From contig NC_043011.1 of NCBI RefSeq assembly GCF_006345805.1, forward strand, positions 50,480,464 to 50,544,463: DNA of 64,000 nucleotides, written 5' to 3'. Below are positions 35,458-63,109 of the stretch, one piece after another. The translations under genes and the position numbers were made by a program. Position 1 is the first letter of the stretch. Every line of letters starts with the position of its first letter. This stretch comes from Octopus sinensis. Lineage: Eukaryota. The notes under the pieces were generated by a model, which was not told the origin of the DNA, made no database searches, and saw nothing but the letters and a program-made list of their open reading frames with translations.

Positions 35458-35932
35458 AGATAGATAGATAGACAGACAGACACAGACAGACAGACAGACG
35501 GACGGACGGACGGACGGACGGACAGACAGACAGACAGACAGACAGACAGACAGGTAGACAGACAGGTAGACAGACAGACAGACAGACAGACAGACAGATA
35601 GATAGATAGATAGATAGATAGATAGATAGATAGATAGATAGATAGATAGATAGATAGATAGATAGATAGATAGATGGATATAGATATGTGTGTATATATT
35701 TATCCAGCATTCATATTTCTATACATTACTAAGAGCATTTTGTTATCCCCTGAAACGCCCGATTACTCGACCAGAACTATACTGAAACACGTTCACTGCA
35801 CCCACATATGTATAGATTCTAGCATCAAACAACTATATGTATACTCTGTATTTTATGAATGCACAACAAACGGAAGTGACGGTGTTGTTATAAAACTTTG
35901 AGATTTTAAAGCAGAACTTCACATTTTTTTAG

Positions 35933-36032
35933 GTGTCAGGGCATTTAGAGTGGATTGCGAAGTAATGGCAAAACGTTACTGTGCTGAGAGCTTTAAGCCT
36001 GCTGCCAAAACCGATACGAAAACATTCTGCAG
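35933..36032 (+). CDS. Gene A exon 2, VRAFRVDCEVMAKRYCAESFKPAAKTDTKTFC (phase 1 to 2)
   Basis: Acceptor CACATTTTTTTAG|GTGTCAGGGC and donor CAG|GTATGT. Open frame; the same exon start and three Cys occur in paralog 63013-63109. V-R-A fits a signal-peptidase -3/-1 site. Confidence 0.82.
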
Positions 36033-36290
36033 GTATGTATGTATGTATGTATGTATGTATGTATGTATGTATGTATGTATGTATGTATGTATGTATGTAT
36101 GTATGTATGTATGTATGTATGTATGTATAGACAGACAGAAAGACAGACAGTTAGATAGATAGATAGATAGATAGATAGATAGATAGATAGATAGATACAT
36201 ACATACATAGATAGATAGATAGATAGATACATAGATAGATAGATAGATAGATAGATAGATAGATAGATAGATATAGATAGATAGATAGAT

Positions 36291-36438
36291 AAAGTTTCTT
36301 TATTGACCACACAGGGCTGCACACAGATGAGACAAGTTACAAGGTAGAGCTTTTCTTTTGGGGGATGATAAAAACAAAAAACAAAAGAAACAAAAACAAA
36401 AAAAAGGGGTGGCGTAGGTTTTCGATCAAGAGGGATCG
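36291..36438 (-). mobile_element. Tx1 3'-terminal fragment (about 150 bp) embedded in (TAGA)n
   Basis: Matches the 3' UTR at 63214-63330; (TAGA)n on both sides. Confidence 0.8.
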
Positions 36439-37095
36439 TAGATAGATAGATAGATAGATAGATAGATAGATAGATATAGATAGATAGATAGATAGATAGA
36501 TAGATAGATAGATAGATAGATAGATAGATAATCTTACTATGAGTATATGTATTATATGTGTGTCATTCTATATTGACAAATATAGAATATCGTTATCAGA
36601 ATGCTAGATGTATTGCAATGGATCCAAGTTGATGGAACGAAGAATATCTGATTTATATATTAAAACATCTTGTAAAATGAAATGTAGACGCCATTTGTTT
36701 TTAAACTAGCCCCGATTGAAGAAATGATAGCTGCACTATCAATTTTCTCTTGACCGGGGTATTGGTCGTTTACTCATATATATATTTATGTGAACTAATT
36801 AGGCAAAAGACAATGCGAATTATAATAGGCAACATTCAGGTAAATATAAATAAGTAGACAATTATTTTGGACAATTTTAAATTCAAATTTGTATAATTTT
36901 TCTATCGTTGTATAAAGATCTCCGACAGTGAGACTAAATTTTCTGTCTATTAGTAGAAATATGAAGTTGAGAAATAATTTTGCTCTTAATAATTGAGTAT
37001 TGATTTTGGTTTATTCTTCCTATAACATAACTCTTGAGTCATTTGAAAGGCGAGAATAAGTCCAGAATAGAGTTGATATAAAAATTTTTTTTTTT

Positions 37096-37368
37096 GGAAG
37101 CACTCCGTCGGTTACGACGATGAGGGTTCCGGTTGATCGGAATCAACGGAACAGCCTGCTCATGAAATTAACGTGTAAGTGGCTGAGCACTCCACAGACA
37201 CGTGCACCCTTAACGTAGTTCTCGGGAATATTCAGCGTGACACAGAGAGTGACAAGGCCGGCCCCTTGAAATACAGGTACAACAGAAACAGGAAGTAAGA
37301 GTGAGAGAAAGTTGTGGTGAAAGAGTACAGCAGGGATCACCACCATCCCCTGCCGGAGCCTCGTGGAG
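37096..37368 (-). mobile_element. SINE family A, 5'-truncated
   Basis: 3' two-thirds only; absent from the paralogous position near 24880. Confidence 0.88.
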
Positions 37369-59595: not shown

Positions 59596-59827
59596 AATAA
59601 TAATAATAATAATATAATAATAATAATAATAATAATAATATAATAATAATAATAATAATATATATAATAATAATAATAATAATATAATAATATTAATAAT
59701 ATAATAATAATAAATAATAATATAATATTATTAATAATAATAATAATATAATAATAATAATAACAACAACAACAACAACAACAACAACAACAACAAAAAG
59801 AATAATTATAATAATAATAATAATAAT

Positions 59828-60508
59828 ATGTGGAGAATATGTGCAGAATACGTGGAGATGGACAAGAAACAATAAATCATATTATCTCTAGCTGCCCAGT
59901 CCTGGTAAGAAGGAATATATTCACGACATGACAGAGTTGGAACCTACATACGTTGGAAGCTTATGCCAACATTATGGAATAACAACAGAAAAAAGATGGT
60001 ATAGGCACACACCAGAAAAGGTCACAGAAAACGAGAAAGCAACCATACTCTGGGATATGCCGATACACACAGATAGAGAAATTAAGGCCAACAGACCAGA
60101 TATAGTTGTCAGAGATCATGAGAAAAAAAATGCTTTCTAATTGATGTATCAATACCGGCAGATGACAACGTGTCTCTAAAAGAATGGAGGAGAAACTCTC
60201 AAAATACAAAGACCTGGAAATAGAGGTAACTAGAATGTGGAATCTGAAAACAGAAACAATTCCTATCATAGTAGGTGCATTAGGCATGATAAAAAATATT
60301 CAGACAAATACATAACAAAAACACCAGGACTTACAAACACATATAACATACAAAAAATTGCACTACTAGACACTGCACACATCCTACGCAGAACACTTTC
60401 CATACAATAACCATCAGAGCATCACAACAAATCAAGAACATGCCCAAGTCACACAGAGCTGCGCTCGGTAGTGAAGTGAAAGCACGCTATAAAAATAAAA
60501 CTACTGAA
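59828..60508 (+). mobile_element. R4/Dong 3' fragment inside long (AAT)/(AAC) array
   Basis: WYRHTPEKVTENEKATILWDMPIHTDREIKANRPDIVVRDHE and the standard 3' UTR. Confidence 0.85.
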
Positions 60509-61985
60509 TAATAATAATAATAATAATAATAATATGTAATATAATAATAATAAATAATAATAATAACAATAACAATACACAATAACAATAACAATAAAAT
60601 AATAATAATAATAATAATAATAATAATAATATAATAATAATAACAACAACAACAACAACAACAACAACAACAACAACAACAACAACAACAACAACAACAA
60701 CAAAAACAACAACAACAACAACAACAACAACAACAACAACAACAACAACAACAACAACAACAACAACAACAACAAACAACAACAACAACAACAAACAACA
60801 ACAACACAACAACAACAACAACAACAACACAACCACAACAACAACAACAACAACAACAACAAACAACAACAACAACAACAACAACAACAACAACAACAAC
60901 AACAACAACAAACAACAACAACAACAACAACAACAACAACAACAACAACAACAAACAACACAACAACAACAACAAAACAACAACAACAACAACAACAACA
61001 ACACAACAACAACAACAACACAACAACAACAACAACCAACAACAACAACAACAAACAACACAACAACAACACAACAACAACAACAACAACACAACACAAC
61101 AACAACAACAACAACAACAACAACAACAACAACAACAACAACAACAACAACAACACAACAACAACAACAACAACAACACAACAACAAAACAACAACAACA
61201 ACAACAACAACAAACAACAACAACAACAACAACAACAACAACACAACAACCAACAACAACAACAACAACAACAACAACAACAACAACAAAACAACAACAA
61301 CAACAACAACAACAACAACAACAACAACAACAACAACAATAACAACAATAACAATAATAATAATAATAATAATAATAATAATAATAATAATAATAATAAT
61401 AATAATAATAATAATAATAATAATAATAATAATAATATAATAATAATAATAATAATAATAATAATAATAATAATAATAATAATAATAATAATAATAATAA
61501 TAATAATAATAATAATAATAATAAAAATAATATAATAATAATAATAATAATAATAATAATAATAATAATAATAATAATAATAATAATAATAATAATAATA
61601 ATAATAATAATAATAATAATAATAATAATAATAATAATAATAATACTAATAATAATAATAATAATAATAATAATAATAATAATAATAATAATAATAATAA
61701 TAATAATATAATAATAATAAAATAATAATAATAATAATAATATATAATAATAATAAAATAAGAATAATAATAATAATAATAATCAATAATCTAATAATAA
61801 TAATAATAATAATAATAATAATAATAATAATAATAATAATAATAATAATAATAATAATAATAATAATAATAATAATAATAATAATAATAATAATAATAAT
61901 AATAATAATAATAATAATAATAATAATAATAATAATAATAATAATAATAATAATAATAATAATAATAAATAATAATAATAATAAT
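60509..61985. repeat. About 1.5-kb compound (AAT)n/(AAC)n array; sister array at 59598-59827
   Basis: Direct inspection. Confidence 0.95.
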
Positions 61986-63012
61986 GTAAAATTAATGAAT
62001 CAATTTTAACGAATAATTTTACAAGTAGTTCGGTATGTAAAATGAATCATTATCGGTAAATTTATCAAAACCTAATTATGAGCATAATTATAATTAGGGT
62101 TCTGCAAAATTTGTTTCACCACATAACAAAATGTAGGCTTACAATTATATATATATATATATAAATATATATATATATATATATATATATATATATAATA
62201 TATATATATATATATATATATATATATATATATATACATAGGAGAGAGAGAGAGAAGGGGGAGGAGAAAAGAGAGAGAGAGAGAAACCAATACATAAATA
62301 CATGCCTATCACTGTTTGAGTTGCATAATAGTGGTTTTATCTCTAACTTATATTTTATATATTTATACTGTGAAATATGATTTAATACTAAGTTGAATTT
62401 TTCGCTGTAAGTCTGGAGTTATACTCCCTAATAACATTATGATATATATATATATATATATATATATATACATGCATACATACATACATACATATTTATA
62501 TATGTAGATATAGATAGATTCATACATACATATATGCATATATATGTGTGTGTGCGTGTGAATTCACATACACATACGTATAGTTGTAATTTGAACATAT
62601 GCAATTCATGTGTCTGTGTGTGGGGGTGAGAGTGTGTGTGGGGGTGAGTTTATGTGTGTTTGTGTGTGAGGGGGTGAGAGTGTGTGTTGGGGTGAGTGTA
62701 TGTGTGTTTGTGTGTGTTGTGTGTGTGTGTGGTGTGTGTGTGTGTGGTGTGTGTTTGTGTGTGTTTGTGTGTGTTTATCTCTCATCTATTTTTCTGTATA
62801 TTACTGAGGGATTTTGACGTCCAAATACTCGACCGGAATTATACTGAAATATATTCCTCGCTCCCACATATCTACAAATTCGAACATGAAACAACCATGT
62901 GTATACTCTGTATGATATGAATGCGCAACAGGCAGAAACGACGGTGTTGTTACAAAAATTTAATATCGCAACAATCATTTGAGATTTTTAAAGGAAATTT
63001 CATATCTTTTAG

Positions 63013-63109
63013 GTGTCAGGGCTTATTTTAGAGAGATATGCACTAAAGAGGCAAGACGTTTCTGTCCATCTACCTTTGTACAAGTTACCAGAAGGGATTT
63101 ATTTTGCCG
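63013..63109 (+). CDS. Gene B exon 2, VRAYFREICTKEARRFCPSTFVQVTRRDLFC; remainder of gene beyond the window
   Basis: CATATCTTTTAG|GTGTCAGGGC ... TGCCG|GTATGT. 97 nt, phase 1 to 2, open, with C-x7-C and terminal FC as in gene A. Confidence 0.8.

Follow-up and report, generated by a model that had tools for sequence, protein, structure and literature searches.

The window analysed here, a stretch of 64,000 nt from Octopus sinensis (G000:C15:50480464-50544463; positions are those of the window unless prefixed), holds two copies, A and B, of a short four-exon gene as well as a degenerate relic of it, Z, while a third copy, C, is situated 9-10 kb past B beyond the window end. Together these form cluster 1; a second cluster on the same chromosome was examined through 3-kb loci, which are designated by L numbers. 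A and B are probably members of a tandemly duplicated, lineage-restricted family encoding small secreted disulfide-rich peptides, the core of which is under diversifying selection: in the parts of exons 2 and 3 that code for the mature peptide, the copies differ more than they do in their own introns and flanks. The components of the cluster-1 genes are as follows, with a slash marking the splice sites.

24927-25030, plus strand: degenerate exon 3 of relic Z, with the acceptor kept, frameshifting indels and an early stop
31655-31739, plus strand: promoter-like 5' flank of copy A, with AACACATGTTAC at 31658-31672 and the TATA-like block ATTATAAAATAAA at 31680-31692, ~55 nt before the ATG
31740-31776, plus strand: exon 1 of copy A, encoding MKYFILIFLVIF plus 1 nt, the N-terminal part of the signal; 32/37 identical to B
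35839-35895, plus strand: conserved 57-nt stretch of intron 1 of A, just 5' of exon 2; 48/57 identical to 62901-62957 in B
35933-36032, plus strand: exon 2 of copy A, 100 nt, acceptor tttttttag/G, donor CAG/gtatgt; encodes the signal end R-VRA, then FRVDCEVMAKRYCAESFKPAAKTDTKTFC with Cys1-3
36033-36290, plus strand: (TATG)n/(TAGA)n microsatellite, beginning exactly at the exon-2 donor of A; counterpart in B at 63110-63215
37432-37531, plus strand: exon 3 of copy A, 100 nt, acceptor tttactttccag/, donor TGTGAT/gtaagt; encodes (S)TYKTFEKCMKRNRNVPEFCEILYLKDWFWKKCD with Cys4-6
38323-38430, plus strand: exon 4 of copy A, acceptor atttcttttcag/G; encodes the tail GGSGNTFGVSKTFLLPLSIQYM..., the last codons and the stop being derived from an inserted short interspersed nuclear element (SINE)
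38404-38790, plus strand: the SINE in the 3' end of exon 4 of A, transfer-RNA-derived, with the 12-nt target-site duplication ACAACTACATCA; the original C-terminal residues have given way to SINE-encoded ones, followed by a new stop from the element
54698-54784, plus strand: 5' flank of copy B, with the AACACATGTTAC motif and the TATA-like block
54785-54821, plus strand: exon 1 of copy B, 37 nt, encoding MKYLILIFLVVS plus 1 nt; donor /GTAAGT
63013-63109, plus strand: exon 2 of copy B, 97 nt, acceptor ...ttttag/G, donor /gtatgt; encodes C-VRA, then YFREICTKEARRFCPSTFVQVTRRDLFC
G000:C15:50545616-50545712 (L004:1153-1249): exon 3 of copy B, beyond the window end
G000:C15:50546342-50546428 (L004:1879-1965): exon 4 of copy B, beyond the window end
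G000:C15:50550805-50550841, 50553265-50553361, 50554073-50554169 and 50555353-50555436: exons 1-4 of copy C, outside the window

In A, B and C the four exons are separated by GT-AG introns and can be spliced into in-frame open reading frames (ORFs) that end in stops and comprise 114, 105 and 104 codons for amino acids, respectively. Exon 1, which was found by scanning for an ATG followed by a hydrophobic stretch and a phase-1 donor, has a length of 37 nt (12 codons + 1 nt) and ends at the donor /GTAAGT of a phase-1 intron. Joined to the first codons of exon 2 it reads MKYFILIFLVIF-R-VRA followed by FRVDC..., which by inspection and rule of thumb looks like a signal peptide, in which the n-region MK precedes a hydrophobic core of 10 residues and positions -3 to -1 are occupied by V-R-A. 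Exon 2 (97-100 nt) carries Cys1-3 and ends in phase 2. Exon 3 (97-100 nt), located by a phase-matched acceptor scan compared across copies, carries Cys4-6 and ends in phase 0, and in an alignment of 13 loci its donor is conserved directly after Cys6+1 (TGTGAT/gtaagt in A), both exon-3 flanks being conserved and the ~95-nt exon itself hypervariable. Exon 4 encodes a conserved tail of ~28 residues, GGSGNTFGVSKTFLLPLNIQYMTTTASI in B. Its frame is open at seven loci (A, B, C, L066, L068, L069 and L070), all of which except L068 share the position of the stop, and its indels between copies measure 3, 15 and 18 nt.

That these segments are exons is suggested by several further features. No copy has an open frame leading into exon 2 from upstream, so that this exon must be joined by splicing, and its phase-2 end calls for yet another exon downstream. 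The exon-2 frame is open in A, B and C, with a single frame being open in both A and B, and the A/B indels within exon 2 are 3 and 6 nt long, those in its flanks 13, 19 and 1 nt. More generally, the 9-13 loci compared agree in the boundaries of exons 3 and 4, and the lengths of indels within exons are divisible by 3. Upstream of the gene, the motif AACACATGTTAC ~80 nt and the TATA-like block ~55 nt before the ATG are conserved in both clusters (12-locus alignment), and within the window this motif occurs only twice, once before A and once before B.

With respect to alternative gene models, three candidates were rejected. An exon 1 within 35700-35930 would have to start from ATG-led frames that hit stops or lack donors, the true exon 1 being situated 4.2 kb upstream. 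With exon 3 as the terminal exon, the read-through tails would vary greatly in length between copies, and GTAAGT after Cys6+1 is conserved. Finally, an extra donor in exon 4 at GGA/GTAAG is replaced by GCAAG or ATAAG in other copies, the resulting V/A/I codon changes being conservative.

The predicted mature core consists of 61-63 residues with six Cys in the spacing C-x7-C-x13/15-C-x8-C-x10-C-x11/12-C, all six of which are present in L066 as well as in A, B and C. The net charge of the core is +4.7 in A, +6.8 in B and +1.0 in C, most cores having about +5 to +8. In the tail, a run of small residues (GGSGN) is followed by a spacer and by an end of weak hydrophobicity, a layout which on inspection resembles a glycosylphosphatidylinositol (GPI) signal.

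A preliminary description of this DNA, restricted to an interval starting at 35700 and thus ~4 kb downstream of exon 1 of A, had proposed a conserved signal encoded by exon 1, a hypervariable mature region encoded by exon 2, and fixed Cys codons. The identity of 32/37 that it gave for exon 1 was obtained again (A 31740-31776 vs B 54785-54821), and the signal is indeed conserved, but the 12 residues encoded by exon 1 do not make up the whole signal, which runs into exon 2. Likewise, exon 2 is hypervariable as claimed, but the mature domain spans exons 2 and 3, contains six Cys and is followed by exon 4. As to the Cys codons, those of exon 2 are TGC/TGT/TGC in A, B and C, whereas for Cys4, in exon 3, A uses TGC but B and C use TGT.

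Cluster 1 comprises the three copies A, B and C and the relic Z, and its duplicated units of 8-17 kb are collinear except for transposon insertions. Z has lost intron 3 and the greater part of exon 4, the end of which survives near 25190-25210, and exons 1 and 2 were not found. A search of the genome (2.72 Gb in 13,516 contigs) places cluster 2 at a distance of 16 Mb on the same chromosome, at about 66.65-66.94 Mb on the minus strand, where the genome probes have at least 16 exon-1 matches, 9 exon-3 matches and 11 exon-4 matches; the exon-3-flank and exon-4 probes match these two clusters only. An intact 37-nt exon 1 with the GTAAGT donor is present at 3/3 loci of cluster 1 and 14/16 loci of cluster 2, and a cluster-2 gene joined from L028 (exon 1) and L066 (exons 2-4) has an ORF of 105 aa with the same layout and six Cys. 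Other units of cluster 2 are dead, L069 lacking the exon-3 acceptor and L065, L067 and L072 having early stops, and L070 and L071 each lack one Cys. The family is therefore one of birth and death, with intact copies, Cys-loss variants, SINE-hit copies, dead relics and local duplication. The idea of a high-copy transposon was rejected, as the exon-bearing segments are found genome-wide only in two clusters on one chromosome; one genome probe running into the SINE drew hundreds of unrelated matches.

Two peculiarities of cluster 2 were observed in addition. First, its matches (L016-L031, L065-L072) come as near-identical pairs offset by 95.7-98.0 kb, such as exon 1 at 66932247 and 66836539 or exon 3 at 66916316 and 66820642, and these pairs represent either a recent ~96-98-kb segmental duplication or an assembly (haplotig) artefact. 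Second, L066 contains two tandem exon-2 copies within one gene (reverse-complement positions 264-354 and 591-687), both of which have the acceptor tattttag/G and the donor AG/gtaatt and match the reading frame of exons 1, 3 and 4, Cys1 being absent from the second copy. These may reflect an exon duplication or mutually exclusive exons.

By comparing exons with the surrounding non-coding DNA, based on identities counted from chained collinear BLAST matches over whole units, it is evident that the two central exons are the most diverged parts of the gene. Between A and B, the non-coding identity is 0.814 (4,023 collinear columns), as compared to 0.865 for exon 1 and 0.901 for exon 4, but 0.638 for exon 2 (Fisher p = 8e-5 vs non-coding) and 53/96 = 0.552 for exon 3 (p = 7e-9). 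For B and C, with a non-coding identity of 0.938 (6,758 columns), the corresponding values are 36/37 for exon 1, 87/97 for exon 2, 82/97 for exon 3 (p = 0.001) and 84/84 for exon 4. In cluster 2, L066 and L068 are identical at 71/88 positions of exon 3 vs 1418/1540 non-coding positions, and between the clusters the intron ends and ~1.5 kb downstream align at 65-72% identity, the exon-3 core being unalignable. At the start of exon 2, A and B share 17 of the 18 aligned nt that encode the signal end, as opposed to 43/76 in the remainder of the exon, so that the change in rate tracks the predicted signal cleavage site and not the exon border.

The preliminary description had already inferred a mature exon more diverged than its intron from a 57-nt intronic stretch with 48/57 identities and from exon 2 with 60/94 nt and 13/30 aa identical. 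All these counts were reproduced, and the statement holds over the 4,023 non-coding A-B columns, exons 2 and 3 both being lower. As the intron stretch might have been unusual, the non-coding A-B alignment was examined in 393 windows of 97 columns, of which none has an identity below 0.639; the chosen stretch is thus not unusually conserved.

In order to distinguish replacement from silent change, nonsynonymous (dN) and synonymous (dS) divergence were derived from Nei-Gojobori counts, and the ratio dN/dS (omega) was tested against 1 in a self-written pairwise codon likelihood model (F1x4, kappa and omega free). The family set comprised 3-4 full-length sequences. In the mature region of B and C, there are 24.3 nonsynonymous differences (Nd) at 151 sites and 0.7 synonymous differences (Sd) at 32 sites, corresponding to a dN of 0.181 and a dS of 0.021, with a non-coding divergence of 0.06. 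The replacement rate accordingly exceeds both the non-coding (p = 2.5e-5) and the silent rate (p = 0.04). The signal of this pair has a dN of 0.027, and its tail a dN of 0 and a dS of 0.048. L066 and L068 constitute an independent pair from cluster 2, for which Nd is 16.3 and Sd 0.7 in exon 3, with a dS of 0.05 vs a non-coding divergence of 0.08. In both of these young pairs, replacement change is faster than non-coding change by a factor of 3-4, and the test rejects omega = 1 with p = 0.011 (B-C), p = 0.005 (L066-L068) and p = 0.0003 (pooled), omega being unbounded as no silent change is required. Signal and tail, in turn, have an omega of 0.31-0.45, and exon 4 of A and B a dN of 0.094 and a dS of 0.241. 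The diversifying selection that the preliminary description had proposed is thus borne out by the codon test in two young pairs. Taken together, these results support positive diversifying selection on the core between the Cys, while the signal, the tail, the splice sites, the promoter block and the six Cys have remained constant.

With respect to function, the peptides would be secreted and folded on three disulfides, and their hypervariable loops might be presented to fast-changing external partners. Since most cores are cationic, a host-defence role as an antimicrobial-type effector may serve as a first guess; alternatively, the peptides might be components of saliva or venom, or chemical, mating or recognition signals. 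A more far-reaching and rather unlikely proposal is that of an orphan peptide identity code specific to this lineage, in which hypervariable secreted or surface-tethered six-Cys ligands would act in mate, species or self/non-self recognition, the tail serving as a membrane, GPI or sorting handle.

Several observations weigh against the interpretation as secreted peptides under diversifying selection, or against parts of it. In the old pair A-B, omega of the mature region is 1.7 and not significantly greater than 1, the comparison being saturated with 2.4 substitutions per codon. Moreover, the mature dS of this pair (window 35945-36032 and 37432-37531 vs B) is 0.59 and exceeds the non-coding distance of ~0.21, an excess which is confined to the old pair and stems either from miscounting at codons hit more than once or from a local increase of the mutation rate. 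The signal peptide was identified, and its cleavage site placed, by rule of thumb only, and both the exon-4 model and the choice between the two exon-2 copies in L066 were decided from conservation alone. Copy C is near-neutral in charge, which weakens a purely antimicrobial reading. Finally, the family is absent from both protein libraries that were searched (see below), for which it is not established whether they hold the proteome of this animal.

The raised silent divergence of the old pair bears directly on an alternative explanation, according to which the genes are real and the extra divergence of the mature part is mutational, caused by exon-targeted or microsatellite-linked hypermutation or by gene conversion in patches, with diverged paralogues as the source, together with relaxed constraint. 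The A-B mature dS of 0.59 is indeed above the non-coding distance and above the signal/tail dS of 0.22-0.24 (Fisher p = 0.0045), a microsatellite adjoins the exon-2 donor in cluster 1, and many paralogues could act as donors for conversion. However, conversion and hypermutation would add silent differences too, and silent change is not raised in the young pairs (0.02 and 0.05 vs 0.06 and 0.08 in non-coding DNA), in which replacements have nevertheless accumulated 3-4 times as fast as non-coding changes and an omega of 1 is rejected. Furthermore, the variable zone begins at the signal cleavage site and not at an exon or microsatellite border, cluster-2 copies without the microsatellite show the same pattern, and the Cys codons are spared. 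A purely mutational origin is therefore unlikely, although the mature-coding exons might possibly also be targets of a locally raised mutation rate.

It is less probable still that the whole arrangement is dead duplicated DNA, with the exons being chance open frames in a neutrally evolving segmental duplication. Admittedly, the window is dominated by transposons and microsatellites, no annotated protein matches, several copies are clearly dead (Z, L065/L067, L069, L072), and the last exon of A carries a SINE. Yet conserved GT-AG exons splice in frame in at least four copies across clusters 16 Mb apart, indels are multiples of 3 within exons but not in the flanks, and conservation extends to the signal, the six Cys and the position of the stop. 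In addition, neutrality predicts flank-like divergence and an omega of ~1, whereas conservation in exons 1 and 4 is above that of the flanks, and in exons 2 and 3 below it.

Finally, purifying selection on introns and flanks as regulatory elements or non-coding RNA, with the exons drifting neutrally, might be considered on the grounds that intron ends by exons 2-4 and long downstream stretches align between the clusters at 65-72% and the exon cores do not, but it is highly improbable given that non-coding sequences, intergenic DNA among them, show an even level of identity across 4-7 kb of each unit, that the corrected A-B non-coding distance of ~0.21 matches the signal/tail dS of 0.22-0.24, by which the introns look neutral and not constrained, and that drift would neither yield an omega far above 1 nor spare every Cys.

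Diversifying selection on a family of secreted peptides, as favoured here, would have a number of implications. If expressed, ~20 secreted peptide genes have apparently been missed by annotation. A coding sequence evolving more rapidly than the introns of the same gene is among the clearest signs of an evolutionary arms race, and in other animals families with such a signature comprise toxins, antimicrobial peptides, pheromones and gamete-recognition proteins. The loci thus represent a tangible molecular system in this animal, accessible to cloning and testing. With duplicates of both older and younger age and with alignable introns, they also form a natural case in which selection can be cleanly told apart from mutation bias.

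The remainder of the window is AT-rich and full of microsatellites, SINEs, a fragment of a long interspersed nuclear element (LINE) and mariner-like remnants; two of these elements, the LINE fragment and one mariner-like remnant, reside in the first introns of the genes:

34710-35402, minus strand: LINE-type endonuclease ORF fragment in intron 1 of A (Pfam Exo_endo_phos, E = 6e-7), a transposon and not part of the gene
55230-56600, minus strand: mariner/Mos1-like remnant in intron 1 of B (HTH_48, E = 2e-6)

The mariner/Mos1-like copies at 14773-16072 and 55318-56599 are 81% identical over 1.3 kb, with a match to HTH_48. In all three copies of cluster 1, the (TATG)n/(TAGA)n microsatellite starts at the exon-2 donor, the GT of which is the first repeat unit; the exon-2 donors of cluster 2 are plain gtaatt or gtaaat, without a microsatellite. 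A dense nest of the SINE family inserted in exon 4 of A, with ~380 nt per unit, extends over 37095-41500, including tandem partial repeats at 39234-41275, and further copies of this family are situated at about 9020, 12610 and 25480. Intron 1 of B contains a ~2.4-kb (AAT)n/(AAC)n array (59600-61980) with spurious ORFs of 300-430 codons on both strands. On the minus strand at 7982-8632, a frame of 216 codons with a borderline Pfam match to DUF1180/FAM174-like sequences (29.2 bits vs a cut-off of 27.7) and a strong GC skew may be a low-complexity artefact.

Homology searches did not connect the octopus peptides to any described family. In Pfam no family scored better than E = 0.2, and the PDB sequences contained no match. 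An exon-2 profile run against a library of 1.84 billion representative proteins returned one spurious 10-residue match only, and exon-3, exon-4 and full-length cluster-2 queries returned nothing from a library of 5.8 billion protein clusters. Comparison of the duplicated units by tblastx gave microsatellite noise only, and a literature text search for the tail motifs gave nothing relevant. The family is therefore apparently unannotated, and comparisons with known systems concern its organisation and its mode of evolution.

The likeness to conotoxins and defensins that the preliminary description had pointed out becomes stronger with the whole gene and more copies at hand, as the signal and the Cys are conserved and the mature part is hypervariable. 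The octopus family resembles the conotoxin superfamilies in its conserved predicted signal, its hypervariable and presumably disulfide-framed mature peptide, its fixed Cys, its many paralogues and its dN/dS above 1, as well as in introns and flanks that are more conserved than the DNA coding for the mature part. However, conotoxins have a signal-propeptide-mature layout, whereas here the core directly follows the predicted signal without an N-terminal propeptide, is split over two ~100-nt exons and is succeeded by a conserved C-terminal tail exon. Moreover, there is no adjacent CC pair, no recognised Cys framework and no sequence or Pfam similarity, and the host looks like a different animal lineage.

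Amongst molluscs, the closest parallel is the MgCRP-I family of Mytilus galloprovincialis, which consists of lineage-restricted short secreted peptides of unknown function with six invariant Cys, and in which positive selection is confined to the mature region and both pseudogenes and Cys-loss variants occur (PMC4558851). The parallels to the octopus family comprise the six Cys, the selection on the mature part, the pseudogenes and the Cys-loss variants, and they extend to the gene structure, with a phase-1 intron in the signal, then a ~100-nt exon and then a phase-2 intron (PMC4558851). In MgCRP-I, the C-C-CC-C-C array is located in a single last exon after a conserved pro-region ending in a dibasic site (PMC4558851). 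The octopus family, by contrast, lacks a pro-region, and its C-C-C-C-C-C array is distributed over a pair of exons with a conserved tail exon behind them.

Defensin-type peptides (CS-alpha-beta, big defensins, mussel myticins) resemble the octopus peptides as predicted here in being small, mostly cationic, secreted, built on three disulfides and encoded in tandem arrays, with diversifying selection on the mature part. The octopus peptides differ from them by a longer core of ~60 residues, by the absence of CxxxC and CxC in A, B, C and L066, and by the lack of a Pfam defensin match. Ly6/uPAR proteins have 8-10 Cys and a C-terminal CCxxxxCN, whereas in the octopus core the number of Cys is six, no two of them are adjacent, and UPAR_LY6 is not matched in Pfam. 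To the C-terminal GPI-attachment signal of Ly6/uPAR proteins, the small-residue run, spacer and weakly hydrophobic end of the octopus tail might correspond.

The genes for snake-venom phospholipase A2 and three-finger toxins are the textbook case of exons that diverge faster than introns and untranslated regions among paralogues; as these encode proteins of unrelated folds that are larger or differently framed, they resemble the octopus family in evolutionary mode alone. In general, the mode of evolution matches that of the conotoxin, accelerated venom-gene, defensin-type and MgCRP-I families, but the octopus family is a member of none of them.

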